This document shows, one piece after another, positions 12,722 to 64,000 of a DNA stretch of 64,000 nt. This stretch comes from Neoechinorhynchus agilis (lineage: Eukaryota; Animalia; Acanthocephala): positions 2,266,797 to 2,330,796 of the forward strand of contig CM121342.1 of NCBI GenBank assembly GCA_051530055.1, read 5' to 3'. A program made the translations under genes and the position numbers. Within the stretch, counting starts at the first letter, position 1. Every line of letters begins with the position of its first letter. A model generated the notes under the pieces. That model was not told the origin of the DNA. It was given only the letters and a program-made list of their open reading frames with translations, and did not search any database.

Positions 12722-12763
12722 ACATGCAAATTTTCGAGGCCTCGACCTCCTTATCAAGCATAT
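12722..12763 (-). ncRNA. Minimal type-I hammerhead ribozyme with U3-A8 covariant core (copy 2)
   Basis: Identical to 11766-11807, offset 956 bp. Confidence 0.65.
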
Positions 12764-14018
12764 AAAATCACATGTAGTAGGGGAGCTCATTTGATCCCTG
12801 GACTCGTGTGAGCGGGGCCATCAATTTCCGAGGTGACGCTTCGCCCTGTGCGCTACTGCTCCACGGAGCTTATTAGTTGGAAGGACAAGAGCAAAGTTAC
12901 TCTTGTTGCCTTCAGTTGTCCTCTCCGCATTGATGAGAAGAACTTCCTTGATCAGAGCCTTCTTTGGAGCCCGTTCTCCACCATTTTCACCTTCGTTCCT
13001 CCGAAGTCGATTGTGTGGTCGATTTGCACGGCGAGGTTGAAGATGGCCGATGACACATCACTCCGTTTGAGTGCGTATTCATGCTGCCGATCTCTTTTCA
13101 AAATATCCTGCTTCGTTTGTCCAATATAGAGACATGGTCACAGTTTTTGTAGGGTTAAGGAGATTGAAGCCTCGAAAATTTGAATGTTTAGAAATCTCGA
13201 GGAGGAAAAAGTCGCCGTATAGAGAAAGTAATTTAATATGATTTTGAAATGTATCCACGAGAATGTCTCCGCAAAAAATGGTTCGAAAACGTAGAATCAA
13301 CCAATCTGGACATTTGTAATTCTCTTTTTTTCGACCTTCCGCCCTTTTCGCCACTTCATCGGCGGCTCCTGGAACTGCAAGCGACAATTTGTTTCTGTTC
13401 CCAAGGAGACGGCGCCTTCTTTCTCATGGAAATTTAATGACGTAATTACGTAATTTGCATTTTTGAACGCGCGGTTGAGAGCAGAAAGCGTTTAATTCGA
13501 CACGTTCATCGCTTGATAACGAGCATACACAATCAATTCGTCACGTATTTTCGGTTATTACGGTGAGTCACGTGTTCGCGTCACGTTGGAACGTGTGAAT
13601 GTAAACACACAGGAAAACCTATCGTCGATTGGTTTCTTCAGAAGGCGTTTTCTGAACAACGTTTTCGCTGCATAGTGCGTACTCTGATCGTCTTGACTGC
13701 TCTTCGCTCACACGCAAAAAATCGAGCTGTTCAAGCCGTGATGACGTCGCCTTGAAAAATTACAGGAATCTGTCGATTGTATTAAAATCAGTTTCGATCG
13801 CCATGCTTTAGATTCTAACGCTACCTCGGGTTCTTTTCCTTTGATTTTAATTGAGATTTTATTAGGTTTAAATGGGTCTTTTTCTAACTGATTGGGTTCA
13901 TAATCACATACCTGGAAGAATAGATCGATCGATTTTAAAATTCTAATGTTCAAATAGGGCGTTATTCATAAAAAAAATTTAGGACTGCCTTTCGCACTTT
14001 TAGTTTTTTCTTTGTGAG

Positions 14019-16302: not shown

Positions 16303-16785
16303 ATGCTACATTGTCCCCCCGGTGCCCTGAATACTGTGAATGCGTCCAACATCCTTGAGCCGAGCAATCTTTGCCGACTCTATGGCCGTAGACCGGACGG
16401 TGTCACAGTATTCTCGGGGCGAGGGGAGGCAAATGTCTTCTCTGGGACGCCATTCGCAGCCAGCAACATAAAATTCGCCACCATTAAACCAGGGGGAGCA
16501 GCAACCGCCGCTGAAGAACGCAAAAGGACAAAATACAGGAACCTGAGTCGAAATCATTATTTTGTTCCCTATGGCGTCGAGACACTCAGATCGTTTGTTA
16601 CCGCGGCGCAGGACCTGGTCAAGCAATTGTCTAAGAGACTGAGGCGAATATCTGGCGATCCGAGATCAGGAGCATTTCTCCTACAAAACATAAGTCTGGC
16701 TGTGCAACGAGGGAACGCTGCATCCGTCCTTTCGACTGTTACACCAGGACGGCAGCTGAGTGATCCAGAGCGGCGGCGTGAATGA
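16303..16785 (+). mobile_element. CRE-clade non-LTR retrotransposon 3' fragment (restriction-like endonuclease)
   Basis: LEPSNLCRLYGRRPDGVT..AAEERKRTKY..HYFVPYGVET..LLQNISLAVQRGNAASVL (PD..D/E.K REL). Confidence 0.75.
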
Positions 16786-29399: not shown

Positions 29400-29830
29400 C
29401 CGCAAAATTGGGGCTTCTCTCCTTCCTCGGCTGTCGCTATCACGCTAGCAGCATTGCCTCTGTACTGCGCGCGAGATATTTTGTCGTAGGAATACACCTT
29501 CTCGTGCGTAGGCGGTCTCTCAATTTATTCGAGAGATCCTGGAGCAGAGTGCCGAGCTGCCAAGCGCTCCATACGTCTCTACTCCGAAGGGGACAAAATA
29601 ATGGGCCCTTGCTAATTCTCTATATTTTCGTACCTTCCTCCCTTCCGCTGCAACTCCAGCGATTTTGAGAAAGTACCGAATGTTGCTCACTGCGAGGGAG
29701 TCCACACACGTGACGACCTGGAGAAGGCATTTGCCCTCCCACCACGGAAAGAGCGAAATTCCGTCAGGTCGACGACCGTCTAGTCGACAAAGATGGGCGG
29801 GTTCCAAGATGTTGGCGTGAGAACCTTCCT
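29400..29830 (-). mobile_element. CRE-clade REL endonuclease fragment
   Basis: LEPAHLCRLDGRRPDGISLFPWWEGKCLLQVVTCVDSLA..HYFVPFGVETYG..FLRQNISRAVQR. Confidence 0.75.
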
Positions 29831-30045
29831 CCTGACTTTCGGCAAACGAGACCGTGTCACCCGAAAGCATCAACCAAAGACGGGAGACCAAGTGACAATA
29901 GATAATTTCGTTTTCATGGTTAAGAAATATTTCGAAAGAGGAAGCTTCTTCAGTCATCTAAAAACTTTATTCTGTGCTGAAGTGTGCATCCCTTACACGG
30001 CTTGGGCACATCCCTCCGGATCCTCAGATACCTCCCGAGGAGGTG

Positions 30046-43170: not shown

Positions 43171-43785
43171 GCGTAAAATATCGATTAGATTTCGAATTAA
43201 TTCTCATTTGAATTCGGATACATTTTTTAAGAACAAAGAATATTCTCACATTCCTTCCGGCACTGAGCCAATATTATTGATTCGCTAAAATGATTCCCTC
43301 AGCGTGAAGATGTTGTTTGTTCTTGAGGGACTCATTGAATGTTCTACTGTTTACGACATTGTCTGTCTTCTCCATCCTCCAAACAATTATTACTTCTGTC
43401 ACGGGCTGTAAAACACTGACATACATATTCGTTGATCTTTTGTTAGCCGGATGACATAACCGCGCACCACTTACATATCGGTTTGCTAAAAACCCATCCG
43501 CCGGTGTAAAATACTAAACAAACATCCTTAAGCTTCAGACGAGCTTTTGATTCAGTCCACACCCCCAATTTCCTGTCATCTTACTCTCGTCTACTTCTGC
43601 AAGTAATGGAATGACGCCAATAGTAGTTCTCGGTGTCTCTCCTCGTGTGTACAAGAATAGCTAAACTGACCGACACCATCCCTTCCCATTATATTCCTCT
43701 TATCGAAGAAAGTCTAATTTACACCATTAAGCCCGCGGCAGTCCGCATTTTCGACAGAATCCTTTTAGAAAACGAAGGCACTAAT

Positions 43786-45510
43786 ATGGGAGCTTGCGTG
43801 AGCAACAAACAAAAACAACGTAGGACTCGAATAATGAAGTATGATCGAAATGAACAACATCACAATCATTACCCTAGCAATTCTAACAATGTTCAAAACT
43901 CATTCAGCTACATTAACACTAAACCCACTCCTGGTGTGGACATGGTCGTAAATGGCAATGTTCATCATAGTCGACTCATTCACTCGGCATCTTCTGATTG
44001 CTCTCAAAACGCAAGACCTTTCAAACGGACAAATGCTGTAAATAACAACGGTCTTGCTCACCATCTATATGGAAATAATCGTGGCAAGTTGTACATAGCG
44101 CTTTACGATTACGAAGCGAGAACTGCGGAGGATCTTAACGTGAGGAAAGGAGATACACTTGAGATTTTAGACGGGCCCGATGATTATCCTTGGTGGTATG
44201 TTATGTCTAGAACTACCGGTGCAAAGGGTTACGTTCCAGCGAATTTTATAGCCGAAGTGGAAAGCCTCGAAGCTGAACCGTGGTATTTCGCAGAAGTTAG
44301 AAGATTGGACGCTGAACGATTGTTGCTACATCCTGCTAATGATATCGGTGCTTTTCTCATTAGAGATAGTGAAAGTAGAAAGACTCATTATTCACTCTCT
44401 GGTAAGTATCTTTCCTTTTTTGTGATTTGTTGCATTAATGACTCCTTGTCTGAAATAGTGAGAGATACATTGGAGGTAAAACATTATCGAATCCGTCATT
44501 CTCCTGAAGAGGGATGTTTTTTCATCGCTCGGCGAGTGACTTTTAAGACTTTGCATGATCTTGTCGATTATTACAGTCGAACAGCGGAAGGACTTTGCGT
44601 TGAGCTCCGAAGACCATGCGCGCGTACTGCCGTTCCAACAACTGAAGGATTGTCCTATAATACAGTTGACAAATGGGAAATTGACCGAAAGTGCATAAAA
44701 TTGACCCATAAACTTGGTCATGGTCACTTCGGAGATGTCTACGAAGGCGTTTGGTGTGGAAGTGTTCAGGTGGCTGTTAAAATGCTAATCCACGGATCAA
44801 TGAATCGATCGGACTTTCTTGCTGAAGCTCAAATAATGAAAAAACTTCGCCATCCAAAACTAATTCAATTATTTGCAGTCTGTACATTAGAAGAACCTAT
44901 TTACATTGTCACGGAACTGATGCGAAACGGTAGTCTGCAACATTATCTTCAGACATCGGAGGGGAAAAGAACAACAATGCCCACCCTTATTGATATGGCA
45001 GCACAAGTTGCAACCGGAATGGCATATCTTGAAAGTCAAAACTATATCCACCGGGATTTGGCAGCTCGAAATATCCTCGTAAACGATAATCTTGAGGTTA
45101 AGATCGCAGATTTCGGTTTGGCTCGTATTTTACAAGATCACCAGGAAGGCATATACGATGCCAGGCAAGGAACCAGGTTCCCTATAAAATGGACAGCGCC
45201 GGAGGGTGCACTTTATAATAAATTCACTATTAAATCAGACGTCTGGTCGTTTGGAATATTATTAGTAGAGCTTGTGACTTATGGTCGAGATCCGTATCCG
45301 GGTCTAAATAATAATGAAGTCTTGAAAAGAGTGCAAAATGGATATCGGATACCATGTCCAGTAACGTGTCCTCGGCAATTGTACGCAATAATGCTCGAGT
45401 GCTGGAGAAAAGCACCTGAAGATCGACCCGCATTTGAAACATTACAATGGCGACTAGAGGAGTTTTATTCTCTGGATAAACTGCAATATGACGGCGATTC
45501 ACCGAATTAA
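43786..45510 (+). CDS. Src42A: Src-family tyrosine kinase, Src42A/FRK-like (SH3-SH2-kinase), one 57-bp intron 44402-44458
   Basis: MGACVSNK myristoylation/palmitoylation start; [15 protein letters not shown]3; [15 protein letters not shown]2 (splicing gives HYSLSVRD); [32 protein letters not shown]; C-terminal tail Tyr (LQYDGD). Confidence 0.95.
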
Positions 45511-46428
45511 ACGAATATTAAGCCCTGAAATGATGTTTTGTATACCTTGTCTCGTGTGCTTGTGATCGCAGCCCAACGAACCTATGTTTTTTATATAAAG
45601 GCTTTTGTTTTTTATTTCGTCAAATTTAGTTTCGATGGTGAAAAAGGCAGAATGCGCATTAAGCTTGTACTCTTAAGCATTCTTCGATTATCTTATACAC
45701 TCTCGTTCTTTATAATTTATTTCCTAACCAAATCGGTTTAATCGACTACCCAGCGATGATATGAACTTTTAAAAATTTATAAATCCACCAAAAGTATTAG
45801 ACCTTAAAACGAAAACTGATGGGCAAAAAAATAACATGACCGATTCGCCCGAAAATAATATCGGGTAAAAATAAGCGTTCCCACTTAAATAAAATCGAAC
45901 TTAATAACAAAAACGCTGATCAAAAGGCTTACATGTTATTAATTCTGAAGAGCGAAAATCATATTAGGGGGTTATTATACATTCTATTTTTGCACCATAA
46001 AAATCGTTAAGACGCAAGGATAGCTTTGATCCCGAAAACTTTTTGCTTTCGTTTTATTTACGCTTTTTCGCAGTTATGCCAAGAGATATTAAATCCCTTT
46101 GAAACTAACATATCTGCGTTTGAACAAATGCACGCAAAAAGAATATTAGATAATCTTCTCAACTGTCTTTGTGTCACAAGATTTTTTTGGGTAAATTCTC
46201 TTCGAGATCAAAATGTCTCATTCGAATATTTTTGTTAAACAAATCAGGTCCACATTTTGTTTATTCACAGTGTATTTTCGTTCACTCGATGTTTACAAAA
46301 TTATATTTGCCATAGGAAACTAAGTTTGTTTATAGTCAATATATCTTTTAGTTGCTAGTACACAATCTTCGAACTATTTAACATCTCCAAATTATATACT
46401 AGAAAGGATTATACCAAGGTATTTATTG

Positions 46429-46978
46429 ATGTATCATTCTTATCTTCACCGTGCTCCTTTCTTTTCTGCTCTATGCATTCTCAGTCACTTGTGGTCGAGC
46501 CTCAAACCAAAATGCTTTGAAAACGGAACTGAAAATGGAATACTTAAAAAAGCATTCGAACCAGGAAGCCCCAGGGGCAAATTCTAAAACTACAATGCCA
46601 ACAGATCCGTCCTCGTACCTTCAAAGTGTAATAAATACGACGGCTGTAGAGGACGTTCCAGTTCGCGATGATGTGCTCCGATATTTCAATGGGATTTTTG
46701 GAAACCTTCTTAATCTGATAAAGTTAAACGAAGGATGTTATTGCAACGATATCAGGATGGAGACAATCATTAAGCTTCTAAAAACAAGGGATAAACTATA
46801 CGAAAAATATACGAAAATAGGAAAGCCGCCAAAGCATCTACCGGATAAACATGTTCTCGAAATAGCCAAATGCTTCGATCCATACATTGAGTGCCTTGCC
46901 AAAATGGATCGCATGGGATTTCAGTTTATGATGATGATGTTTGACCGGTTCAAAAATGTCGTAAATCGTAAAATTTAG
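46429..46978 (+). pseudogene. Secreted orphan protein, copy A, +1 frameshift in codon 4
   Basis: ATGTATCATTCTTATC versus ATGTATCATTTTATC in copies B and C; downstream frame is identical in amino acids to copy B. Confidence 0.75.
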
Positions 46979-48329
46979 GATCTACGAAACATTCCAGATT
47001 TTAGCTATAAAAATCATGTTATTAACAGATTAAACTAGTGTTTTAGTCGTATGATAATTGTTTAATTTTCATTTTCTCACTTAAAACTAAGAAAAAATCC
47101 ATGGGGCAGATAGAGTTGTAGATGCCAGGCGGATTCAAAATATTTCATTGAGATATTTCGAAAGAGGAAGCATAGCCACGTCCGTCATTGTAAATTGATC
47201 TGATCAATCGCGAAATATTTCTATTAAATAAAATATTTTTTATCCTGGATGATGATAACGGAATCCCTTTTTTAATTTATCTTCTATATTAATTTAAAAT
47301 TTAAATAGAAGAAAACGATGGATTCTTACAAAAGGTGAACATAGGACTCAGAATTCACTTCAAACCTTCATGATTCTGCACTTCAGAATCGGATCTTAGA
47401 TACAAAAACCGAACCTTCAAAATACTCCATCCATAGGAAAAGAAACTTTAATGAATTTCCATCAATGAGCCATGGAACCAAAGTGCCAAGCAAAATCCAC
47501 AAATCTGAATAGCAAGAAACCATTTGACCAATCAAATTTAAGAATCAACTTTTTGGAGATTACAAAGATTTCCGACATTAGATCTTTCCGATTTCTGTTC
47601 GAAAGAAAATACAATTCTTAATGTGGAATATCGTCCTTCGTATTGGGATCAGTAAACCGGATTCTCGGATTTTGTCTATTGGTTATCATTTTGGACGTAT
47701 CGGTGAATTTTTAGCGATCTTTAAGCTTTCGTTTTATGTTCTTGCGTAAAGACGACGACGGAAATAGCTCGGTTTCTCGACCATTCGTCAATTTTTAGAA
47801 TTTAGGATTCTTAGGTGCCTTCGGAGATTAAGATTCGTCATTAAACATTTTGATATTCGGTTCTTGTGACAATTGATATCTTTCTCTAAAACCTAAATTA
47901 GAGATGCGTCTTTGTAAATTGGATGAAATATCACTGAAAAATGAAGCTTATTAATGATTATTGTCTAAGAAATTTCTAAGTATCGCAGGTTGTTAATTTT
48001 TAAGGGTTTAAGTGGTCAATTTGATGCCTATCAATTTAAATTTGATCATCTTTCACCAAAATATGAACTGTGTTTTGTTTTAAGATCTTTTTGAGATTGC
48101 CTTATACTTCTTTTCAATTTTCACTAGAATTTTCGCCTGTGATTACCTTAAATCCTCAGTTTATTTTGTGAATAGAGCTTTAATCATTGTGCTTGCAGTT
48201 TAAACTCGTCATTTTATCCTTCATTAGGCAATTTCTTTGAAATACGTATAAAATTCTTGGACTCGGTAAGTTTAAAATGGTTTAGAGTGGGATCTTTGGC
48301 CACAAAAATTAAACAGCGAATAAGTTCTT

Positions 48330-49920
48330 TTGACGAAAGTTTTACTCAATGCTTTACGAGAGCATTCGAGCTACTTAGGGAGTGTGCCAGCGCCTGACCA
48401 CCGCCGAAACTCAAATCGGTCGCTGGATGGACGCGTTTCTTCGAAGCTCGCAGACGGAGATGTCAGAGTAGCAGTCCGTCTTTTATCATTAATATACAGT
48501 CTCGACAAAAGATAACAAAGAAACTTTACGAGCTCTTCGTTCCAAACGTCCCTGTGAGGGCGGTCGGTAGTATTTCGAAGTATTCTCGTCCTTCGATAGT
48601 CGACCGTCATTCTCTGGATCCGTTATCCACACCGGATCCACCATCCACTTCGGATCCAACATTCATTCCGGATCAGTCATCCACCCCGAATCAGTCATCC
48701 AAACCGGAGCCGTAATCCACTCTGGATCCAGCATTGACTCCGGATCCGTCATCCACTTCGGATCCAACATACATTCCGGGTCAATCATCTAAACCGGATC
48801 CGTAATCCACACCGGATCCGCAATCCACCCTGGATCCAACATCCACTCCGCATCTGTCATCCACCCCGGATCGGTCATCCAAACCGGATCCGTCATCCAT
48901 TCCGGATCGGTCATCCAAACCGGATCCGTCATCCACTTCGGATCCAACATACATTCCGGATCCGTAATCCACACCGGATCCGCAATCCACGCTAGATCCA
49001 ACATCCACTCCGCATCTGTCATCCACCCCGGATCCGTCATCCACTCCGAATCCGTCATCCATTCCGAATCCATCATCCAGTCTAAAATGATCACGAGGAT
49101 CCAGAGGTACATGGGTCCTCTTCTAAAACAAAATAAATAAATAAAACGTGTTGTTATCCCTTATGTTTTATCATCGAAATCGGAATTGAAGATGGCAATC
49201 TATTCTTTTGCCAACGGATCAGCTCATGAGCTTGACGGGCTGCGGCCCAAACACCAAAAAGATATGACTTCGTTTTCAGCAGATGACGCTCCTCAGTCTC
49301 TTGAAGATGCATTGGCATGCCTAGTCGATTAATTTGTAGGGTGAGAGTAGATTCCGAAAGCAATTGAGTTATTTTTCGGCACAGCTTTGTGTGCCCTCGC
49401 AAGAAAAGGAAGGTGGGATGCGTCCCATTGCAATTGGAACAAATCTAAGCCGCTTAACGGCAAAATTCTTAAATAAAAGGATCGCGGAAAATGTAGGGAT
49501 GCTGCTCCGCCGGCGCAGAGGCGATTGTTCATTAACTTCGCACGTTCATCATCGGAAACTCAAAGCCGTGCGTGATCTTGAAATGTGATTTCAAAAATGC
49601 ATTCAACACAGTTCACTGAGCAGATTTGCTTGAAGTAGTTGGAGAACACGCACCAGAAGTATTTCGCTATTTCGTTAATGCTTCGTGGGACTGCAACTCC
49701 CTTGTTGTTCAATAATCACGTTTTATGGTCAGAAAGAGTGGTGTAGGAAGGGAATCCTTTGGGCCCAGCAGCCTCCTATCTCGCAGTCAATTCCGTCGTG
49801 CACTCTCTCCAGTCCATTTTTAATGGCTGGTAACTGGACGATGCCACGATCGGAGGTAACCCCTCCGTAGTACTGCGCGATTTGGAGACACTCGTGAAGG
49901 AGACGGTGAAAATTTGCAAA
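48330..49920 (+). mobile_element. CRE-clade retrotransposon RT fragment (interrupted at ~48580-49157)
   Basis: SSKLADGDVRVAVRLLS; KEGGMRPIAIG..RLTAK; DFKNAFN; LDDATIG motifs. Confidence 0.75.
48604..49081. repeat. 18-bp minisatellite (~26 units, consensus CCGGATCCGTCATCCACT) with partial 9-unit higher-order repeat
   Basis: Direct inspection; followed by GAGGATCCA-N8-TGGGTCCTC hairpin (49095-49120) and (AAAT)n tail. Confidence 0.95.
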
Positions 49921-50489
49921 ATGTGAAATCTCAAAAGCGAAAATCATATTCGCGGGATTATTATACATTCTATTTTTGCACCATAAAATTCGCTCGGACG
50001 CAAGGATAGCTTTGATCCTGAAAACTTTTTGCTTTCGTTTTATTTACGTTTTTTCGCAGTTATGCCAAGAGATTAAATCCCTTTGAAACTAACATCTCAC
50101 TTAAAATCAAGAAAAATACTTGGGGCAGATAGAGTTGTAGATCCCAGACGGATTCAAAATATTTCATTGAGATATTTCGAAAGAGGAAGCATAGCTACGT
50201 CAATCATTATAAATTAATCTGATCAATCGCGAAATATTTCTATTAAATAAAATATTTTTTATCATGGACGATAACGGCAACTCCTTTTTAACTTATGTTC
50301 TATATTAATATAAAATTTCAGAGGCCGATTCGTATCCAAACGACCAATGCAACTTCGTTCGTATAATTAATATCTAAGCGAGGATCCTACTAAAATGCAA
50401 TTGTTGAGACATTTGCAATTTTTTATGGAAAATAATTAACAATCAGCACAAATCTGCCAAAAAAATAAAAAATTATTTTAATTGAGAAG

Positions 50490-51740
50490 GCATGAAATCA
50501 CTTACACCGCCGCTCTGAATCAGCTGCCGTCCTGGTGTAACGGCCGAAAGGACGGATGTAGTGTTCCTTTGCAATGCACAGTCAGACTTATGTTTTGTAG
50601 GAGGAATGCTCCTGATCTCGGATCGCCAGTGATTCGCCACAGTCTCTTGGACGCCATATTCATCACTAAAACCTCGCATTTCGCAGCATTTAATTCAATG
50701 CAAATTTCCACCGTCTCTTTCACGAGTGTCTCCAAATCGCGCAGTACTACGGAGGGGTTAGCTCCGATCGTGGCATCGTCAAGTTACCAGCCATTAAAAA
50801 TGGACTGGAGAGAGTGCGCGAAGGAATTGACTGCGAGATAGAAGGCTATTGGGCCCAGATGGTACTCTTGTTGAACTCCTCTTTCTGACCATAAAACGTG
50901 ATTATTGAACAACAAGGGAGTTGCAGTCCAATGAAGCATTAACGAAATAGCGAAATGCTTCTGGTGCGTGTTCTCCAACTACTTCAAGCAAATCTGCTCG
51001 GTGAACTGAGTTGAATGCATTTCTGAAATCACATTTCAAGATCACGCACGGCTTTGAGTTTCCGGCGATGAACGTGCGAAGTTAATGAACAATCGCCTCT
51101 GCGCCACAAGGTCTACAGCAGCCTAACTGAGTATAGCGGAGCAGCATCCCTACATTTTCCGCGATCCTTTTATTTAAGAATTTTGCCGTTAAGCGGCTTA
51201 GAGTTGTTCCAATTGCAATGGGACACATCCCACCTTCCTTTTCTTGCGAGGGCACACAAAGCTGTGCCGAAAAATAACTCAATTGCTTTCGGAATCTACT
51301 CTCACCCTACAAATTAATCGACTAGGCATGCCAATGCACCTTCAAGAGACTGAGAAGCGTCATCTGCTGAAAACGAAGTCATATCTTTTTGGTGTTTTTG
51401 CCGCAGCCCGTCAAGTTCGTGAGCTGATCCGTTGGCAAAAGAATAGATCGCCATCTTCAATTCCGATTTCGATGATAAAACATAAGGGTTTGAAATACAA
51501 GTGACCGCCGTCACAGGGAAGTTTGGAACGAAGAGCTCGTAAAGTTTCTTTGTTATCTTTTGGCGAGACTGTATATTAATGATAAAAGACGGACTGCTAC
51601 TCTGACATCTCCGTCTGCGAGCTTCGAAGAAACGCGTCCATCCAGCGACCGATTTGAGTTTCGGCGGTAGTCAGGCGCTGGCACACTCCCTAAGTAGCTC
51701 GAATGCTCTCGTAAAGCATTGAGTAAAACTTTCGTCAAAA
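50490..51740 (-). mobile_element. CRE-clade retrotransposon, internally deleted (RT joined to REL C-terminus and 3' end)
   Basis: EGGMCPIAIGTTLSRLTAK..QLGCCRPCGAEAIVH; LNAAKCEVL joined to KRLWRITGDPRSGAFLLQNISL, nearly identical to 16303-16785. Confidence 0.75.
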
Positions 51741-53090
51741 GAACTTATTCGCTGTTTAATTTTTGTGGCCAGAGATCCCACTCTAAACCATTTTAAACTT
51801 ACCGAGTCCAAGAATTTTATATGTATTTCAAAGAAATTGCCTAATGAAGGATAAAATGACGAGTTTAAACTGCACGCACAATGATTAAAGCTCTATTCAC
51901 AAAATAAACTGAGGATTTAAGGTAATCACAGGCGAAAATTCTAGTGAAAATTTAAAAGAAGTATAAGGCAATCACAAAAAGATCTTAAAACAAAACACAG
52001 TTCATATTTTGATGAAAGATGATCAAATTTAAATTGATAGGTATCAAATTGACCACTTAAACCCTTAAAAATTAACAACCTGCGATACTTAGAAATTTCT
52101 TAGACAATAATCATTAATAAGCTTCATTTTTCAGTGATATTTCATCCAATTTACAAAGACGCATCTCTAATTTAGGTTTTAGAGAAAGATATCAATTGTC
52201 ACAAGAACCGAATATCAAAATGTTTAATGACGAATCTTAATCTCCGAAGGCACCTAAGAATCCTAAATTCTAAAAATTGACGAATGGTCGAAAAACCGAG
52301 CTATTTCCGTCGTCGTCTTTACGCAAGAACATAAAACGAAAGCTTAAAGATCGTTAAAAATTCACCGATACGTACAAAATGATAACCAATAGACAAAATC
52401 CGAGAATCCGGTTTACTGATCCCAATCCGAAGGACCATATTCCACATTAAGAATTGTATTTTCTTTCGAACAGAAATCGGAAAGATCTAATGTCGGAAAT
52501 CTTTGTAATCTCCAAAAAGTTGATTCTTAAATTTGATTGGTCAAATGGTTTCTTGTTATTCAGATTTGTGGATTTTGCTTGGCACTTTGGTTCCATGGCT
52601 CATTGATGGAAATTCATTAAAGTTTCTTTTCCTATGGATGGAGTATTTTGAAGGTTCGGTTTTTGTATCTAAGATCCGATTCTGAAGTGCAGAATCATGA
52701 AGGTTTGAAGTGAATTCTGAGTCCTATGTTCACCTTTTGTAAGAATCCATCGTTTTCTTCTATTTAAATTTTAAATTAATATAGAAGATAAATTAAAAAA
52801 GGGATTCCGTTATCATCATCCAGGATAAAAAATATTTTATTTAATAGAAATATTTCGCGATTGATCAGATCAATTTACAATGACGGACGTGGCTATGCTT
52901 CCTCTTTCGAAATATCTCAATGAAATATTTTGAATCCGCCTGGCATCTACAACTCTATCTGCCCCAAGGATTTTTTCTTGATTTTAAGTGAGAAAATGCA
53001 CAATTAAACAATTATCATACGACTAAAACACTAGTTTAATCTGTTAATAACATGATTTTTATAGCTAAAATCTGGAATGTTTCGTAGATC

Positions 53091-53639
53091 CTAAATTTTA
53101 CGATTTACGACATTTTTGAACCGGTCAAACATCATCATCATAAACTGAAATCCCATGCGATCCATTTTGGCAAGGCACTCAATGTATGGATCGAAGCATT
53201 TGGCTATTTCGAGAACATGTTTATCCGGTAGATGCTTTGGCGGCTTTCCTATTTTCGTATATTTTTCGTATAGTTTATCCCTTGTTTTTAGAAGCTTAAT
53301 GATTGTCTCCATCCTGATATCGTTGCAATAACATCCTTCGTTTAACTTTATCAGATTAAGAAGGTTTCCAAAAATCCCATTGAAATATCGGAGCACATCA
53401 TCGCGAACTGGAACGTCCTCTACAGCCGTCGTATTTATTACACTTTGAAGGTACGAGGACGGATCTGTTGGCATTGTAGTCTTAGAATTTGCCCCTGGGG
53501 CTTCCTGGTTCGAATGCTTTTTTAAGTATTCCATTTTCAGTTCCGTTTTCAAAGCATTTTGGTTTGAGGCTCGACCACAAGTGACTGAGAATGCATAGAG
53601 CAGAAAAGAAAGGAGCACGGTGAAGATAAAATGATACAT
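53091..53639 (-). CDS. Secreted orphan protein, copy B (182 aa from ATG, intronless, signal peptide, 4 Cys in mature part)
   Basis: Intact ORF MYHFIFTVLLSFLLYAFSVTCG-RASNQ..; hydrophobic N-terminus; GCYC and CFDPYIEC. Confidence 0.8.
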   Translation of the reverse strand: MYHFIFTVLLSFLLYAFSVTCGRASNQNALKTELKMEYLKKHSNQEAPGANSKTTMPTDPSSYLQSVINTTAVEDVPVRDDVLRYFNGIFGNLLNLIKLNEGCYCNDIRMETIIKLLKTRDKLYEKYTKIGKPPKHLPDKHVLEIAKCFDPYIECLAKMDRMGFQFMMMMFDRFKNVVNRKI

Positions 53640-54349
53640 CAATAAATTCCTTGGTATAATGTTTTCTAGTATATAATTTGGAGATGTTAAATAGTTCGAA
53701 GATTGTGTACTAGCAACTAAAAGATATATTGACTATAAACAAACTTAGTTTCCTATGGCAAATATAATTTTGTAAACATCGAGTGAACGAAAATACACTG
53801 TGAATAAATAAAATGTGGACCTAATTTGTTTAACAAAAATATTCGAATGAGGCATTTTGATTTTTAGAGCATAGTTTAAACTTTATCAATATTTTTAAAA
53901 ATACTCGAAGAGAATTTATCCAAAAAAATTCTTGTGACACAAAAACAGTTGATAATATTCTCTAATATTCATTTTACGGGCATTTGTTCAAACCCAGATA
54001 TCTTAGTTTCAAAGGGATTTGATATCTCTTAGCATAATATCGAAAAAGCGTAAATAAAACGAAAGTAAAAAGTTTTCAAGATCAAAGCTATCTTTGCGCC
54101 CGAGCGGATTTTATGGTCCAAAAAAAGAATGCATAATAATCCCGCTAATATGATTTTCACTTTTGAGATTTCACATTTTGTTTATTAACAGTGTATTTTC
54201 GTTCACTCGATGTTTACAGAATTATATTTGCCATAGGAAACTAAGTTTGTTTATAGTCAATATATCTTTTAGTTGCTAGTACACAATCTTCGAACTATTT
54301 AACATCTCCAAATTATATACTAGAAAACATTATACCAAGGAATTTATTG

Positions 54350-54898
54350 ATGTATCATTTTATCTTCACCGTGCTCCTTTCTTTTCTGCTCTATGCATTC
54401 TCAGTCACTTGTGGTCGAGCCTCAAACCAAAATGCTTTGAAAACGGAACTGAAAATGGAATACTTAAAAAAGCATTCGAACCAGGAAGCCCCAGGGGCAA
54501 ATTCTAAAACTACAATGGCAACAGATCCGTCCTCGTACCTTCAAAGTGTAATAAATACGACGGCTGTAGAGGACGTTCCAGTTCGCGATGATGTGCTCCG
54601 ATATTTCAATGGGATTTTTGGAAACCTTCTTAATCTGATAAAGTTAAACGAAGGATGTTATTGCAACGATATCAGGATGGAGACAATCATTAAGCTTCTA
54701 AAAACTAGGGATAAACTATACGAAAAATATACGAAAATAGGAAAGCCGCCAAAGCATCTACCGGATAAACATGTTCTCGAAATAGCCAAATGCTTCGATC
54801 CATACATTGAGTGCCTTTCCAAAATGGATCGCATGGGATTTCAGTTTATGATGATGATGTTTGACCGGTTCAAAAATGTCGTAAATCGTAAAATTTAG
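54350..54898 (+). CDS. Secreted orphan protein, copy C (182 aa; differs from B by P>A and A>S)
   Basis: Intact ORF; head-to-head with copy B; upstream TATATA-like box conserved in all copies. Confidence 0.8.
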   Translation: MYHFIFTVLLSFLLYAFSVTCGRASNQNALKTELKMEYLKKHSNQEAPGANSKTTMATDPSSYLQSVINTTAVEDVPVRDDVLRYFNGIFGNLLNLIKLNEGCYCNDIRMETIIKLLKTRDKLYEKYTKIGKPPKHLPDKHVLEIAKCFDPYIECLSKMDRMGFQFMMMMFDRFKNVVNRKI

Positions 54899-56869
54899 GA
54901 TTTACGAAACATTCCAGATTTTAGCTATAAAAATCATGTTATTAACAGATTAAACTAGTGCTTTAGTCGTATGATAATTGTTTAATTGTGCATTTTCTCA
55001 CTTAAAACTAAGAAAAAATCCCTGGGGCAGATAGAGTTACAGATGTTGTTATCATAATCACCCCCTCGGCGGTCTGAAAATATTTTATTGAGATATTTCG
55101 AAAGAGGAAGCATAGCTGCGTCAATCATTGTAAATTAATCTGATCAATCGCGAAATATTTCTATTAAATAAAATATTTTTTATCCTGGATGATAACGGCA
55201 TCTCCTTTTTAACTTATCTCCTATATTAATTTAAAATTTCAGAGGCCGATTCGTATCCAAACGACCAATACAACTTCGTTCGTATAATTAATATCTGCGA
55301 TTTGAAAGAAACACATATACTTCTCTCTGATGAAAATGTCTTAAATGTTGGCACGTTTATACATAGACGACAATTCTCAGAATCGATTTTTTTATATAAA
55401 GATTATATACTGTATTTTATAAAGATGGTTAACAAATGAGTCTGAATCCGGGCAAAAGAACCAGACCGCTCAGAATTGCAGCAAAAATTGACTAAAATTT
55501 TGTTTAGAAAACTATGACCTTTTTCGATTGTTTAAAATGGCATATTTAATTTCGCTGCGAAGCGACGATCCTACTAAAATGTAATTATTGAGACATTTGC
55601 AATTTTTCATGGAAAATATGTAACAATCAGAATAAATCTGCAAAAATAGTAAAAAAAATTGTATAAAAATCTTTATTTTCGCAGGAAAATCTTTAAAACG
55701 AATTCCTTACTGCATTCTCGTACTTTACAAAGAAATAACTTCTGATGTTCAATTGCGAAATTTTTTGTGACATTTCTGGAAAAAGGAAAATTGGCAACAA
55801 ATAAAGGAAATTACTAAGTCTTACGAATGCAATTTACCTGTACTTACAAAAATACTTGAAATCTGAGGTCTATCACTGAAAAATTGTAAGACGATCAACT
55901 GCCTTCAAGAACGACTTTACGTAAACAAAACCCCAAGAGAGAATAAAAACAAGGATTAAACTATAAAGTAAAATTATTTGATCGAAGTATTCGCGGCAAA
56001 ATCTAGATTTTCCATTAGATGGAGTTTCTTAAACGAGGATAATATTCAAGATATGATTCAAAAATATCATTAAGAGGGGAATCCAAGTGTTTTCAAATCT
56101 TAAATAATTGCAGTACCATGTTAAAACATGGGAAAATATGGCAAATGTTCTCAAGTAGACATACGCCTTTCATAGCAAATATTTTGGAAAATAGAATGAA
56201 GTGAAATTAGTTTCCCACCGCTAATGGCAGCGAATTCTGCAAAATAAGAGAACACAATGTACAAAAATTGCAAGCGAAGTTCTTTTAAAAGTAATTTATA
56301 TAGAAATATTTTTTAAACATGTATGGTTTTCTTATGCTCGAAAGATAGGTTTCAACGACTCGAACATAAATCACATTACCGATCGTTTTATTTTGTACCA
56401 AAGCACAATCGCAACTTTCATAAATTTTATTAAAGGCAAGCTAATTAATTACTTGTTAAATGACTTTAGCCAATAGGATCAAACTTTACGGGAATGGTAA
56501 TGTTGAGGAAGCCTCAATGTAGAAAAAAATGGAATTCGCTATTATTTTAAATCTTGTTTATTTGGCAATTCAAAAAATTTTTAAAATTATGAAAAGTTCC
56601 TCCTATCATCGTCTATTTCATTGTTGTGAATAAAATCGAGGCAGTTGTAAAGTAAAATATAAATGGCATAACCAGAAATCGCTGGCTCCAATTTCTTAGA
56701 AAAATGTGGTAAATTATAATATAAATTTCGCGTAAACCAATTCAATTAATAAACGCATTCTTGAGGTTGTGGTATGGATTAAGTGCCAAAGAACTCGGAA
56801 GTTAAGAATTACCTAAGAATCCATTCTGAAAGCTGAATTTAAAATCACTGTAACGTTAATTCATTTTAA

Positions 56870-57185
56870 CTCTAAACCATTTTAAACTTACCGAGTCCAA
56901 GAATTTTATATGTATTTCAAAGAAATTGCCTAATGAAGGATAAAATGACGAGTTTAAACTGCAAGCACAATGATTAAAGCTCTATTCACAAAATAAACTG
57001 AGGATTTAAGGTAATCACAGGCGAAAATTCTAGTGAAAATTTAAAAGAAGTATAAGGCAATCTCAAAAAGATCTTAAAACAAAACACAGTTCATATTTTG
57101 ATGAAAGATGATCAAATTTAAATTGATAGGTATCAAATTGACCACTTAAACCCTTAAAAATTAACAACCTGCGATACTTAGAAAT
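56870..57185. repeat. Further partial copy of the amplicon spacer (matches 51780-52095)
   Basis: CTCTAAACCATTTTAAACTTACCGAGTCC..CCTGCGATACTTAGAAAT near-identical; ends just before the Gypsy element. Confidence 0.85.
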
Positions 57186-57200
57186 CTCCAAGAGTATCGT

Positions 57201-60200
57201 TGTGATGTCATAGGGTGTTAGTTAGTCTTCCGTGCTTTGCTGAATTATTTAAACATGTTTTGAGGCGATGGTAGATTACTAATTGGTGACTCCGACGATG
57301 TTGACCGTAGTTCAGCACCTGAAACAACTCGATAAAGCCACGTAAATGCTGTTTTGCCCAAACTTCCTCAGGTTTGGACACGAAAACCGCGAATTTGGTT
57401 TGTCCAAGCTGATGCTCAATTTGCTTTACGGAGCATAACACCGGACGAAACAAAGTATTATTATGTTACAGCATCACTCGGTCAAGACAGCTGTAAGAAT
57501 TATCGATATTCTCGAAGCGCCACCAAAGTCTGATAAGTACTCCCAACTCAAACAGCGACTGCTAAAAGCCTACAGTTTATCTGAGAACGAAAGGGCTAAT
57601 CGGATCCTACACATAAAGGAACTTACAGGCGAAAAGCCTTCGGAATTAATGAATCAGATGCTAGCGTACCTCGAAAGCAACCCACCATGTTTCTCATTCC
57701 GGGAAATATCTTCGGAACCCACGCCCGAGGAGATCCGATCTATTCTTGTTCATTCAAAAATAACCGAACTTCGTGAGCTTGCACGCGCTGCCGACAACAT
57801 TTGGCAAACAAGGCAACTTTTAGCGTCCTCAATTAAGAAAAAGATTGCGACCAAGCAAATCCCAGTAACAGTATCAGATTTATGTTATTTCCATCGTAAG
57901 TTTGGTGACATAGCCAGGAAATGTCGATCACTCTGTAAACGGTCCCAGGAGTTCAATTGGAAGGCGAATCCAAAAAACGCGTTGACCAATCATCCGTAGA
58001 GGCGATGGTGATCGGTCCCTCTATCAACAACCTGTTCTTTATCAACGAATGTTTATCCGGGCGACGTTTCCTAATTGATACCGGTACCGAAGTCAACGCC
58101 CTTCCGGCTTCATCGCGCGATAAGAGAACCGGACACTGACGTGTATAGTTTTTATACGTTATCCGAATCTCTCAAAGACCTGTTAGAAATAACGGATGCA
58201 TACGAGAGTCCGAAAGAGGCATTAAAGATCATGCCGAAGATAAAAAGGAAAGATCAATCAGACCCAGAAGTGTTGAAGGTTAGTACTTGGAGGCACAAAG
58301 GGCGGCAGATGGAGAGGAGCAACAGCGACGAACAAGGCAAGTCTGCGACAATATTCATCAAGGCCTGTCTACACTGTGACCGAAAGCACAATGATGTTTC
58401 GAGGTGCCGAGCCAAGACAATGATGTGCTACAAATGCAACAGAGTTGGTCATTTGTCACGTTGCTGTAAGACCTTTCGAATGGTTCAACAGATAATTGGA
58501 CAGGATTCGAGCGACGATGAAGCGATTGTGCGATGCATTAGAACCGTAAAGAGAAAAAAAAGCGGAAATTCGCGTGAAAATCAACGGGATCCTGATCTCT
58601 ATGGAATTCGATACAGGAGCTGCTGAGTCCATCATTACCCGAAATATATGGGCGAAGCTGGGAAAGCCAAAATTAGGAGAAGCTCCTTCAATCAGAGCGT
58701 TTGGTGGCACAAAGATTGATACTCTTGGGTCATGCAATGTGCAGGTGACGCTAGCTAATCGAACGGAAACGCTCAACGTCATTGTGATCTCGGGCGTAGA
58801 AAGGCCAATCTTCGGATTACTTTGGATGCTCAAATTCGATTTAACGATTCCTGCAGCACGGATTGTTGATGTCCACAAAATACGAGAAACGAACGAAACG
58901 GAGGATCTATCCGATGCGAAGAAAATCGAGGCTTTGATGAGGAACGAATTCGAGACGGTATTCGATGGAGAACCGGGGGCAGTAACAAATTTCGAAGTAA
59001 GCCTGTCGGCCATTAAGAACAAGAAGGTACGATGTGGAAGGCTAGAAGGGTGCCTTTCGCTCTCTATGAACCTCTAGAGAGAGTCGGAGCGATTGGTCTC
59101 GAATGGTATTCTAATCTCAGTGGACGTGACAAAGCAGGATCTCAAGTGGGCGACGCCCATCGTAGTCGTACGAAAACCGAACGGGAAAGTAAGGGTCTGC
59201 GGAGACTTTAGAGTCACGCTGAACAAATTTATGAAAGTAGATTCCTTACAAATACCCGCATTTGAGGAGGTGACCCAGAAGTTAGTCAAATCTAAATTCT
59301 ATAGCACAATCGACCTCCGAGACGCATATCTCCAACTACCGATGGACAGTGAATCTAGTAAGATGCTCACGGTCGCAACCCCGATGGAGCACTTTAGATA
59401 TACTCGATTGCCTCTGGGGATCTCCGCTGCACCTGCAATCTTCCAGAAATACATAAATGGCTTATTGCAAGATATCACAAATGCGGCTGCATATTTGGAT
59501 GATATTTTGGTTGCAACCGAAACGGCAGACGAACATTTAAAATGCTTTAGGAGCGTTTTCCATCGTTTATGTGTCGCAGGATTGAAGGTACATGGAGATA
59601 AATGCGTCTTCATGAGCCGGAAGATCCGGCATTTGGGGCATATGATTTCTGAAGACCAGATTATTCCTTTGGACGAAAAAACCTGAGCACTAACATGCGC
59701 TTCGCCTCAAAATAATCCAAGGGAACTAAGGGCGTACTTGGGATTGGCCAATTTTCTCGCTCGATATTACCCGAACTTCCAACAATATTGCGCTCCTCTG
59801 CACGAACTTACGAGAACGAGTGTCGAATAAAAATGGACCGCAATCGAAGAAGATGCGTTCAGGTGTCTACAAAAACAATTACGAAAACCCAGGGGATTGA
59901 CACCGTTCGATCGAGCAAAAGAAATAGCTTTAACATATGATGACAGTGAAGTTGGTCTCGGAGCAGTCTTGATGCATAGAACCGAAGCAGGCGAATTCCT
60001 TCCGATCTCATTCGCTTCGCGTGTACTCACCAAAGCTGAGAAAAATTACTTCCAGATTGAGAAGGAAGCCCTGGCTCTTGTTTACGGTGTCACAAAGTTT
60101 CACGACTATCTGTATGGAATGACGTTCACACTCTTCTCAGATCACAAACCCTTGAAGTTCATCTTCGGCCGGGATCGAGTGTTGTCGAAAGTAGTAAACT

Positions 60201-63200
60201 CAAGAATTATCCGGTGGGCACTTCAGTTATCATGCTATGAGTACGAGATTGAATACATCCTGGAAGTCAGAATCACTACGCCTATATCTTGTCCAGGATG
60301 CCCATGCTAAGTGAAGACGATTTGATGAATTCCACAGAAGGCGATGTTGGGAAGTGTTTCGATTGCCAAGCCAACCGACCCGAGGAACGAGAAATGCCGC
60401 TTTTCTCATGGGAACAGCCGAGGAACCCTGGAAAAGAATTCATATGGATTTTGCGGGGCCAATCAATGGGTTCGTGTATCTCATCGTGGTTGCGCGTGCT
60501 CAAAGTGGCCGGAAGTTTGGATGAGACCAACGTTTAGTTCAAAAAGCACTATCCAATGCCTGAGAGAAGCGTTCGCACGTTGGGGGTTACCGGAACGAAT
60601 AGTTTCTGACAACGGGCCACAATTCGCGTCAATCGAATTCGCCGAGTTCTGCAGCAGAAACAAAATTGTTCACTGTCGAACATCGTTTTACCATCCTCGG
60701 ACGAATGGGCTAGCAGAGCGGTTCGTAGCGAAGTTGAATGGCAAAGCGGGTAAAGGGGAGGAGAGCTTGCAAAAGTTTTTGCTATCATACAGAAACTGCA
60801 TTCACTCGTTGACCGGAAAAGCGCCTTCACAGATGCTGCAGGGCAGACGACTCTCAACTCTATTCGATAATCTAAAACCGAATCCAGTCAAAACGGAATG
60901 AAGGAAGCGGGTAGAAGAGAGAAGACTTCACGATGCAAAGGCAAGGCAGTTTGAAGATTTCCAATTAGGTGGTTCAGTGTGGCATCGAGACAGACGAAAT
61001 GAACAGTGGGTTCCCGCAACCACTCTATTGAGGAATGGCCCTTTATCTTATCACGTGGACACAAGTTCGGGAATGAAGAAGGCTCACACGGATCAGCTGA
61101 GACTACGAACGACCGAAGCACAAGACGATTTGTAAGGTCTAGATAACCAGTTGAGCGATTCAACCAAGAAAGACTCAGAACAATATGGATCGCTTAATGT
61201 CTCAATCAAAAACGAACCTAAAACCGATGAGACTGAGAACAACCAGAAGGGCGAAGACGAGCGGGCGAACGAAGAATTTCATAGCAACGAAGCCACTAAT
61301 GAACCCGCGATTCGAGATCCAGAAACAGAGGCGAAGGAAATGTTTCACAAAACGATGTGACGTTGCACGTAATGGGTTAGGTGTTGGACGCTTTGCGTTA
61401 GGTGTTTTTGGAATATTTAAAACATGTCAGACACCAATCCAGATCACTGTCAGCAGCTAACGGTTCATCAATTCCGACATTCGGCAGTAAACTACTGCAA
61501 TTGCATCTGAGTGAAACCCAGACAGTTAAGCACCCTATCCAAGGCGCCGATTTCCAACGATATTCAGGTTTATTAGTTGACGTCAGGAATAAACAACTGT
61601 TCAATGCCGAAAGGTTCGCAACAACACCATAAACTTCCCTTCCTGTATCGATCGAAGCCCTCCGTGTCGATTTCCTCGGATCGAAAAGCAACGAATTCAG
61701 TAAAATTCTCGCAGAATTCTTCGATATAACGAGACCGACATTTTTCGGATGCTTCGACCAAATATGCAGTAGAAGATTTTATTGAGACACAAGGACCACC
61801 ACTTCACACTAGGTCTCGTCGTCTACCACTCAATGATCCCGCTGTTACCAAGTCTGAGTTTAAGAACATGGAGGACCTTGGAATCATTAGACGCTCCAAT
61901 AGCCAGTGGTCACCTTCGTTACATCTCGCACCCAAATCGAGTGGTGGATGGCGACCTTGCGGTGACTACCGGAGGTTGAACGATGTCACGATTCCAGGCA
62001 GATACCAGATATCTAGGATACAAGATATTTTAGCCAAACTCGCTGGAGCAATGATCTTCTCAAAAGTCGACTTCGTCCGAAGGTATCATCAAATTCGAGT
62101 GGTAGAACAGGACGTCCCAAAAACTGTGATTATTACGCCTTTTGGCCTTTTTGAATTTCTTAGGATGCCGTTCGAGTTGAAAAATGATGCTAAAAAATTC
62201 CAACGTTTGATGGATACTGTTTGCCCAGGTATGGATTTTGAGTTCGTTTACTTGGACGGTATAACTAATCGATCCGAACATACCAATCATCTACGAACAT
62301 CGTTCAATCGACTTTCAGAATATGGACACGTTCTCAATCTGGTAGAGCAGGTCGATTTCCTGGGACACCGTGTCAATGGACAGGGTACAATACCATTGTC
62401 AGAAAAAAATGAACGTGATTCGCAGTTTCCCTCCTCCAACATCCACCAAAGCTTTGCAAAAATTTGTTGGTATGGTAAATTATTATCATCACTTTATCCC
62501 TCTGGCAGCCCGACCGATGCGTCCAATGTTTCAAGCACTTTCTGTTAAAACAGATCGACAAACTTTTTTTTGGACAGCTGATATTACTTCAGCACTCGAA
62601 AACACCAACAGTGCTCTAGCAGAGGCAACGATGCTTGCACACCCAGTCAATGGTGCTGCAATATCTATCAGTACCGACGCATCCGAATTTGCTATTGGTG
62701 CTGTTCTACAGTAAAAGGTGTCAAGTCAATGGCAGGCTCTGGCATTCTTTAGCAAACAATTACGTAAACCCGAACAGCGTTACAGAATCTTCGATCGCGA
62801 ACTTCTGGCGATATATTTCGCTGTCCGACATTTTCGATATTTCGTTGAAGGTCGACCATTTACGATATACACCGACCATCATTGACCTTTGATTTATGCG
62901 ATGTCCAAAGTTTCAGATCCGAGGTCAGCTCGCCAACAGCGCCATTTAACTTACATATCTGAATTCACAACGAGTATCGAACACGTTAGCTGAAAAGAAA
63001 ACCAAGTTGCTCACGCATTATCTCGCATACAATCTGATCAAAATATCCAGGCATATCGATCGGCAAATACCTCGTTACAGCTTAAAGAAATTCATTTCAG
63101 TGATACAGGACGAACCATCTTGTGCGATATATTGACTGGTCGTTGTAGACCATTGGTACAATCATCGTGGACGAAACGAGTTTTTGATTCTGTGCACCAA

Positions 63201-63240: not shown

Positions 63241-63244
63241 AATG

Positions 63245-64000
63245 AAAGTAAACTGTGCATAAACAAAATGTGGACCTGATTTGTTTAACAAAAATATTCG
63301 AATGAGACATTTTGATCTCGAAGAGAATTTACCCAAAAATTCTTGTGACACAAAGACAGTTGATAATATTATCTAATATTCTTTTTACGGGCATTTGCTC
63401 AAACCCAGATAATGTTAGTTTCAAAGGGATTTAATCTCTTGGCATAACTGCGAAAAAACGTAAATAAAACGAAAGCAAAAAGTTTTCAGGATCAAAGCTA
63501 TCCTTGCGCCCGAGCGAATTTTACGGTGCAAAAATAGAATGTATAATAATCTCGCGAATATGATTTTCGCTTTTGAGATTTCACATTTTGCAAATTTTCA
63601 CCGTCTCCTTCACGAGTGTCTCCAAATCGTTCAGTACTACGGAGGGGTTACTTCCGACCGTGGCATCGTGCAGATATCAGCCATTAAAAATGGACTGGAG
63701 AGAGCGCGCGAAGGAATTGACTGCGAGATAGGAGGCTGCTGGGCCCAAAGGATTCCCTTCCTACACCACTCTTTCTGACCATAAAACGTGATTATTGAAC
63801 AACAAGGGAGTTGCAGTCCCTTGAAGCATTAACGAAATAGCGAAATACTTCTGGTGCGTGTTCTCCAACTACTTCAAGCAAATCTGCTCAGTGAACTGTG
63901 TTGAATGCATTTTTGAAATCACATTTCAAGATCACGCACGGCTTTTTCCGATGATGAACGTGCGAAGTTAATGAACAATCGCCTCTGCGCCGGCGGAGCA
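63245..64000 (-). repeat. Another amplicon piece: upstream unit joined to CRE RT at the same junction as at ~49920
   Basis: GAGATTTCACATTTTGCAAATTTTCACCGTCTCC at ~63577-63610 is the reverse complement of 49899-49932; ORF 63539-63778 matches 49729-49968. Confidence 0.85.

Follow-up and report, generated by a model that had tools for sequence, protein, structure and literature searches.

The DNA considered here is a 64,000-nucleotide window of chromosome CM121342.1 (a record position minus 2,266,796 gives the window position) of Neoechinorhynchus agilis, an acanthocephalan, or thorny-headed worm, that parasitizes the intestines of fish. It holds three copies, A, B and C, of an intronless 182-codon open reading frame (ORF), embedded in duplicated segments that also contain fragments of a long interspersed nuclear element (LINE), a retrotransposon of the type that lacks long terminal repeats (LTRs). 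An original prediction, made from the sequence alone, had located these ORFs and their GCYC and CFDPYIEC motifs correctly, together with the frameshift in A and the two differences between the proteins of B and C, which fall at residues 57 and 157. Its count of three, however, is the number in the window only: the family has at least eight copies on two chromosomes, 6 of them intact. We put at about 70% the probability that these copies form a taxonomically restricted N. agilis multigene family which encodes a 182-residue secreted precursor and was amplified by duplication at the level of DNA.

Positions of all copies and of the features around them are collected in Table 1. Copies F, G and H, found through protein-cluster look-ups and the fetching of their loci, all lie within 26 kb beyond the window end and have unrelated genes between them (Pyr_redox_2, MBOAT fragments). 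Copies D and E, on the second chromosome, encode identical proteins with 90% identity to the window copies; ~5.6 kb upstream of copy D stands a long array of tandem repeats, its period ~110 bp (L001 1725-4519, chromosome CM121341.1). In copy A, a single-base length change just past codon 4 puts the ATG out of frame, and the remainder is almost identical to B. Upstream of the ATG of copy C the frame is closed by a stop at a distance of 96 nucleotides, and no other in-frame start intervenes. Copy F lost its start codon and upstream block in a rearrangement, and their place is taken by inverted sequence from upstream of another copy.

A search with the 182-residue query matches GenBank 'hypothetical proteins' of N. 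agilis from assembly GCA_051530055.1, a compact assembly of 46 Mb in three chromosome-scale contigs that was annotated with BRAKER and RNA-seq hints (PMC12690905). The GenBank models of the paralogues disagree in length (127, 147, 168, 182 and 356 amino acids); one of them loses the signal region to an intron, and one is joined to sequence derived from the LINE. The exact sequence of copy C is absent from the protein collection, and this copy is probably unannotated in GenBank. The protein clusters to which the family belongs consist of genome-derived GenBank entries only, with none derived from read assemblies, and the main text of the N. agilis transcriptome paper makes no mention of such a gene. 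Manual curation of the family's gene models would be of benefit.

Table 1. Copies of the 182-codon gene, the duplicated units that carry them, and associated features (window coordinates unless stated; aa, amino acids; RT, reverse transcriptase; UTR, untranslated region).
Feature	Position	Strand	Description
Src-type SH3-SH2-tyrosine kinase gene	43633-45510	+	one 625-codon ORF; annotated product 555 aa
Unit A	45941-48579	+	left arm of large inverted duplication; upstream segment, gene and 1.6 kb downstream
Upstream 180-bp block of A	46249-46428	+	putative promoter or 5′ UTR
Copy A	ATG 46429; in-frame body 46439-46978	+	frameshifted; GenBank product 147 aa, starting at Met36
LINE pre-RT fragment	47942-48598	+	decayed, non-LTR (LINE-like); ~1 kb downstream of A, same orientation
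18-nt minisatellite	48596-49135		~30 units; within the LINE fragment of unit A
LINE RT pseudogene fragment	49158-49918	+	frameshifted; YLDD-type motif; inverted partner of 50699-51488
Start of gene-less second tandem unit	49926-50375	+	segment 45941-46114 joined directly to 47075-47302; 961 gene-bearing bp missing
C-terminal ORF fragment, same non-LTR family	50470-50652	-	no Pfam domain
Mirrored RT fragment	50699-51488	-	two-frame stitched translation matches Pfam RVT_1, E=2e-12
Unit B	51489-54171	-	right arm of inverted duplication; 96% identity to 45941-48579, reversed
Mirrored LINE pre-RT fragment	51492-52126	-	in unit B
Copy B	53091-53639	-	intact, 182 codons and stop
Upstream 180-bp block of B	53640-53819	-	putative promoter or 5′ UTR
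Upstream 180-bp block of C	54170-54349	+	putative promoter or 5′ UTR
Unit C	54172-55239	+	head-to-head with B; 95% identity to 46251-47302
Copy C	54350-54898	+	intact, 182 codons and stop
Isolated 320-bp downstream-region piece	56869-57188	-	equivalent to 47969-48288; abuts LTR-retrotransposon block; remnant of destroyed unit
Decayed LTR-retrotransposon block	57463-62548	+	separate ORFs: gag-like (weak DUF7041), aspartic protease, RVT_1, RNase-H-like stretch, integrase (rve)
Tail of unit F	63241-64000	-	RT fragment and upstream segment, equivalent to 49503-50095 and 45941-46282; gene just beyond window
Copy F	window-equivalent ~66.5 kb, same chromosome	-	5′ end lost
Copy G	window-equivalent ~75.5 kb, same chromosome	-	intact
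Copy H	window-equivalent ~89.9 kb, same chromosome	-	intact
Copy D	chromosome CM121341.1	direct orientation with E	intact
Copy E	chromosome CM121341.1, 7.7 kb from D	direct orientation with D	intact
C-terminal ORF fragment, same non-LTR family	16303-16785	+	no Pfam domain
C-terminal ORF fragment, same non-LTR family	29457-29957	-	no Pfam domain
C-terminal ORF fragments, same non-LTR family	L001 7701-8196, 15399-15880		next to copies D and E; no Pfam domain
Discordant GenBank models	L001 10001-10715, 17865-20262; L002 10001-10444; L003/L004/L005 10001-10384		paralogue loci

The basic unit, as it stands in A, consists of an upstream segment (45941-46250), a 180-bp block, the gene, a 3′ flank to 47302 and ~47940, and a LINE fragment. 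Units A and B are the arms of the inverted duplication, and C is separated from B by a spacer of 354 bp; in its 3′ flank, unit C has the same haplotype as copy G, which lies beyond the window. The RT next to the gene is split over three frames, with stops and frameshifts, and the LINE of unit B continues into a C-terminal piece. The minisatellite in unit A recurs in unit F, beyond the window, and is absent from the mirrored unit B, where positions 51488 and 51489 are contiguous; its expansion therefore came later than the inversion, or else B has lost it. Six-frame Pfam scans of the transposable-element (TE) remnants were run on X-masked and stitched translations.

Pieces of the unit had been reported to recur elsewhere in the window, and self-BLAST bears this out at 49926-50375, 56869-57188 and 63241-64000. 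At 49918-49926 the RT fragment is joined to a further copy of the upstream segment, which is the junction expected of a tandem duplication with a period of 3985 bp. Unit F repeats A's 46439-50095 at 98.6% identity and then runs into the upstream segment, confirming the head-to-tail arrangement. Most of a further unit has been replaced by the LTR-retrotransposon block, and 56869-57188 and 63241-63581 are its remains. A second RVT_1 ORF within the block (61868-62548) suggests that the block is nested; no LTR pair flanking 57463-62548 was found in a repeat scan of 40-64 kb. On the second chromosome, what the D/E locus has in common with the unit begins at least 220 bp before the ATG and extends through the pre-RT fragment; this same LINE fragment lies downstream of both D and E. 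Since the shared unit includes the LINE fragment, the LINE already adjoined the gene before the inter-chromosomal duplication.

Palindromes such as those formed by A with B, and by B with C across the 354-bp spacer, are a known type of long-read artefact. This genome is a scaffolded Flye assembly of error-prone long reads (PMC12690905). Some of the in-window copies could accordingly be fold-back chimeras or uncollapsed haplotypes, an explanation to which we give hardly any credence. Between the arms there is 2-4% divergence, including indels, and one arm alone has the 540-bp minisatellite; the junctions are distinct, and the copies differ in their outer flanks and have mosaic haplotypes. Further copies stand among unrelated single-copy genes and on another chromosome, and duplicated benchmarking universal single-copy orthologues (BUSCOs) amount to only 1.8% of the assembly's set (PMC12690905).

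The units carry ~180-490 bp of upstream sequence and up to 3.6 kb of non-coding DNA downstream; past the stop codon they reach 0.3-3.1 kb into non-coding DNA and a LINE fragment. Their extents vary from 1.07 kb (C, G) through 1.8 kb (H) to 2.7-3.7 kb (B, F), and A, B, D and E share upstream sequence beyond the 180-bp block. Both orientations occur in the window and next to it: A and C are on the plus strand, and B, F, G and H on the minus strand. Adjacent segments of one copy are discordant in their affinities. The coding sequences (CDS) of G and H show 1 difference in 537 nucleotides, yet their 3′ flanks are 7.3% apart; C and G have 0 differences in 320 nucleotides of 3′ flank, yet differ at 8 CDS sites. 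By CDS the copies fall into the groups {A,B,C}, {G,H} and F, and by 3′ flank into {A,B,F,H} and {C,G}. These mosaic haplotypes point to gene conversion or recombination among copies.

A retrocopy would start at the 5′ end of a transcript and lack promoter and intergenic flanks, which is not what we find. The short unit ends in ...TTAATTTAAAATTT, and there is no A-run or poly(A) tail at this one unit end that was inspected. No terminal inverted repeats were seen at the recurrent boundaries near 46250 and 47302, and no flanking direct repeats were seen at the boundaries inspected, where target-site duplications were only glanced at and not searched for systematically. The copies have the composition of a segmental-duplication cluster, in that non-coding flanks are included, extents are variable, both orientations occur and adjacent segments disagree. 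Shared non-coding flanks, variable extents and both orientations together argue for tandem and inverted segmental duplication at the DNA level rather than retroposition. The proposal of an amplicon built by retroelements is not supported: promoter and intergenic flanks were co-duplicated, and the LINE is a dead, decayed passenger in the unit which in one case contains a duplication breakpoint inside its RT fragment. That LINE read-through carried the gene between chromosomes is conceivable, but nothing requires it. The recency claimed for the expansion applies within the cluster, where synonymous divergence (dS) is at most 0.04, and not to the inter-chromosomal split, which is older (dS ~0.15).

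That the ORF is a real gene under selective constraint is the conclusion we draw from how its copies have diverged between chromosomes. In this one inter-chromosomal comparison of 36 substitutions, C and D differ over the whole gene by 16 synonymous and 20 non-synonymous changes (dS 0.154; non-synonymous divergence, dN, 0.048; dN/dS 0.31; binomial p=0.0014). Over residues 72-182 there are 9 synonymous versus 5 non-synonymous changes (dN/dS 0.12, p=3.6e-4), and the linker, residues 22-71, gives a dN/dS of ~0.6. The CDS is 6.5-7.1% diverged between chromosomes with zero gaps, about half the divergence of its flanks: the upstream 180 bp differ by 12-13%, and downstream the divergence is 11% over the first 320 bp, with gaps in ~98 columns. 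Six copies as much as 7% apart in nucleotide sequence all retain the frame and have no indels, and at this base composition the chance of a 183-codon open frame is ~2e-6 per start. The 180-bp block before the ATG is conserved in A, B, C, G, H, D and E, that is, in all copies but F. A pyrimidine-rich ATCTTTTAG motif, conserved in the same seven copies, lies ~78 nucleotides upstream of each ATG (for example 54262-54273); it may serve as an acceptor for splicing or trans-splicing, or be an element of the 5′ UTR.

The encoded protein has an N-terminal hydrophobic segment, a polar, fast-evolving linker of ~50 residues and a conserved basic domain of ~110 residues. Residues 1-21 are its sole hydrophobic stretch (Kyte-Doolittle peak 2.18), with an h-region from F4 to V19, and the -3/-1 positions are small: V19-T-C21|G22 or A16-F-S18|V19 fits the rule. 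Substitutions among paralogues in this region (F4S, L9I, A16G/P, S18T) retain hydrophobicity and place Gly or Pro at the h/c boundary. The segment at residues 4-19, originally described as signal-peptide-like, is most likely a cleavable signal peptide, and judging from these features the 182-residue product is likely to be secreted. The calculated mature form has a mass of ~18.7 kDa, a pI of 9.2, one N-x-T sequon and four cysteines, C103-x-C105 and C148-x6-C155 (CxC-x42-Cx6C), which could form two disulfides. The helical look of the domain is reproduced by AlphaFold2, although at low confidence (pLDDT 41.7 for the full length and 52.0 for the domain alone): DSSP assigns helices only, at ~81-99, 110-129, 139-156 and 161-179. 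They are amphipathic, with hydrophobic moments of 0.43-0.56, and the C-terminal domain is predicted to consist of four or five amphipathic helices.

At current sensitivity of sequence searching the family is an orphan, and the failure of the first reading to recognize it is upheld. Pfam returned 0 families at E<=1 for the 182-residue protein, and the PDB contained no relative by sequence or by profile. A word-indexed search of 5.8 billion proteins returned the family's own paralogues only, an exhaustive phmmer run against 1.84 billion representatives gave no credible match beyond them, and Foldseek of the low-confidence AlphaFold2 model against the PDB gave nothing below E=5. No confident match to a known TE or housekeeping protein, which would have spoken against the prediction, emerged from the Pfam, PDB or protein searches. 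The sole outside match, a 1058-residue repeat protein (P0003, E=1e-3), was rejected as a summation artefact; each of its eight repeats matches only GCYC[SN]D and a few further residues, at no more than 4.2 bits and E>1e6 each.

Several points weigh against a constrained, secreted product. In a neutral simulation with 36 substitutions the frame was still open in 22% of sequences, and our claim of a gene therefore rests on dN/dS and on the contrast in indels rather than on openness. The estimate of constraint comes from the single comparison given above, and gene conversion may account for the near-identity of the CDS within the cluster no less than selection. The discordant BRAKER models (127-356 amino acids) leave RNA support for the full 182-residue form unproven. 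The fold is tentative at the model confidence obtained. Lys and Arg are both missing from the n-region, and the hydrophobic segment is followed by the more positive of its two flanks, so that an uncleaved membrane anchor is possible. The explanation as a whole is built on sequence and models.

The first of these points could be taken to mean that the ORF does no work, being young or decaying and held open by recency and gene conversion. Protein searches yield no homologues, 2 of the 8 copies are broken (the frameshift in A, the 5′ loss in F), gene models are inconsistent, and within-cluster dN/dS scatters from ~0.3 to 1.6 on tiny counts, too few to inform. We nevertheless judge a non-working ORF to be quite unlikely. 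The dN/dS of 0.12 in the domain was accumulated over the older inter-chromosomal split, across which gene conversion is unlikely; the CDS is free of indels and its flanks have many; and both the upstream block and the hydrophobicity of the signal region have been preserved.

A real protein might also be retained at a membrane by its N-terminal segment, with a helical domain that is possibly cytosolic. The hydrophobic core, at 16-17 residues, could serve as such an anchor, and the lack of positive charge before it is matched by R23, K31 and K35 after it. Set against this are an n-region that is very short, small residues at -3/-1, and, in the paralogues, a Pro or Gly where the h- and c-regions meet (position 16), as is typical of cleaved signal peptides; the four conserved cysteines in a small helical domain would fit an oxidizing, extracellular setting. 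On balance we consider anchoring unlikely and favor secretion.

Copy number might finally reflect transposition, if the ORF belonged to a mobile element, for example to the adjacent LINE as an ORF1-like or accessory gene, or had been carried along in LINE read-through transduction. LINE fragments of the same family lie ~1 kb downstream in the same orientation at both chromosomal loci; a common 5′ boundary near 46250 unites C, G and H, and for C and G the 3′ boundary (47302) is common as well. Helical structure and restriction to one lineage, as in this product, are frequent among LINE ORF1 proteins. Yet the 182-codon ORF is constrained in its domain and intact in 6 of 8 copies beside an RT that is full of stops and frameshifts, and it has no similarity to Pfam or TE proteins, while neighboring TE ORFs match RVT_1, rve and Asp_protease. 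A signal peptide is unexpected on a LINE protein. Six-frame translation, read by eye with no domain search, gave no endonuclease-like sequence between the ORF and the pre-RT region, and the unit ends inspected have no terminal repeats or poly(A), target-site duplications not having been sought systematically. Same-family LINE fragments at 16303-16785 and 29457-29957 have no such ORF nearby, and an exhaustive protein search yielded only these few loci. A mobile-element origin of the ORF is therefore very unlikely in our estimation.

Ordinary genes (BTB, NXF, RNase-PH-like, SLU7, CHGN and the Src-type SH3-SH2-tyrosine kinase) lie to the left of the cluster. The kinase gene ends ~430 bp left of the duplicated segment, at 45510, outside the amplicon; an SH3/SH2 gene near copy H was considered as a co-duplicated piece of it and rejected, there being no tblastn match. 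Long single ORFs are the common reading of the neighboring genes, and an intronless 182-codon gene is consequently unremarkable here, its lack of introns carrying no information on retrocopying. At 11318-13387 the window contains a tandem duplication with a period of 956 bp, 99% identity and weaker internal repeats of ~170 bp, overlapping a 135-residue minus-strand ORF.

In the history that we favor for this secreted-protein family, a unit of ~1-4 kb comprising promoter block, gene, 3′ flank and dead LINE would have been multiplied by tandem and inverted segmental duplication, following one older duplication to the second chromosome, and later gene conversion or recombination would have shuffled and homogenized the copies. 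To go by its anatomy, the mature protein may have an extracellular role in binding or structure. In this it would be like the multi-copy helical secreted proteins that are peculiar to single lineages among gutless or tissue-dwelling helminths. The original reading as effector, toxin or glue protein is conjectural. Candidate sites are the absorptive surface or host interface of the worm, or reproductive secretions such as cement or egg envelope; we found no sequence-level data in the literature on acanthocephalan cement-gland proteins and secretomes. A bolder proposal is that these secreted proteins, specific to acanthocephalans, constitute a new family or fold and play a major role, as a principal component of the male copulatory cement or of the egg envelope or as an abundant carrier at the host interface, with selection for dosage raising copy number and gene conversion keeping the copies uniform. 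Lacking a gut, the worm depends on its tegument for uptake, and a carrier of this kind would compensate for that dependence. We regard so large a role as improbable.

The protein family is new and uncharacterized; as a genomic feature it is ordinary, since lineage-specific genes that are locally duplicated and homogenized by gene conversion occur in most newly sequenced animal genomes. We rate its importance as moderate to low unless expression data tie it to a major function of the parasite. Acanthocephalans are pests of fish aquaculture whose secreted proteins are essentially uncharacterized, and a secreted protein that is specific to a parasite, constrained and encoded in multiple copies makes a reasonable candidate for a marker, an antigen or an entry to tegument or reproductive biology. 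The analysis also has corrective value, in placing at least eight copies on two chromosomes and in assigning the retroelements to the role of passengers and breakpoints rather than that of the engine of amplification.

Comparison with known systems places the family in a familiar landscape. Saposin-like proteins and the arthropod chemosensory proteins (CSP, OS-D), which are small, disulfide-bonded, helical and secreted, have a domain of ~100 residues with paired cysteines, as is predicted for this protein. The saposin pattern is one of six cysteines, however, and the CSP pattern is Cx6C...Cx2C; the CxC-x42-Cx6C spacing of the N. agilis domain matches neither, and with no Pfam match, membership in either group was rejected. 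With LINE ORF1 and LINE transduction the gene shares its linkage to a same-orientation LINE fragment at both loci and a helical product that lacks homologues. It differs in that the ORF is constrained and the LINE decayed, in its signal-peptide-like N-terminus, and in the co-duplication of promoter-containing flanks.

Ampliconic and palindromic families, for example those of sex chromosomes, undergo gene conversion from arm to arm. The N. agilis copies differ from them in having short arms (1-4 kb) that are 2-4% diverged, in standing among ordinary genes and in showing no sign of sex linkage or germline-specific expression. They resemble them in their head-to-head or inverted near-identical units, their mosaic haplotypes and a CDS more uniform than the flanks predict. 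Among the secreted helical families of helminths are the cestode antigen B and hydrophobic-ligand-binding proteins and the nematode FAR and SXP/RAL-2 proteins. The N. agilis protein has no detectable similarity to antigen B, FAR or SXP/RAL-2 in sequence or, on a low-confidence model, in fold, and differs from them in its basic domain with four cysteines. In its overall design it is nonetheless like them: small, with a putative N-terminal signal sequence and a predicted all-alpha structure, and encoded by clustered, multi-copy genes restricted to one lineage and shaped by duplication and gene conversion.

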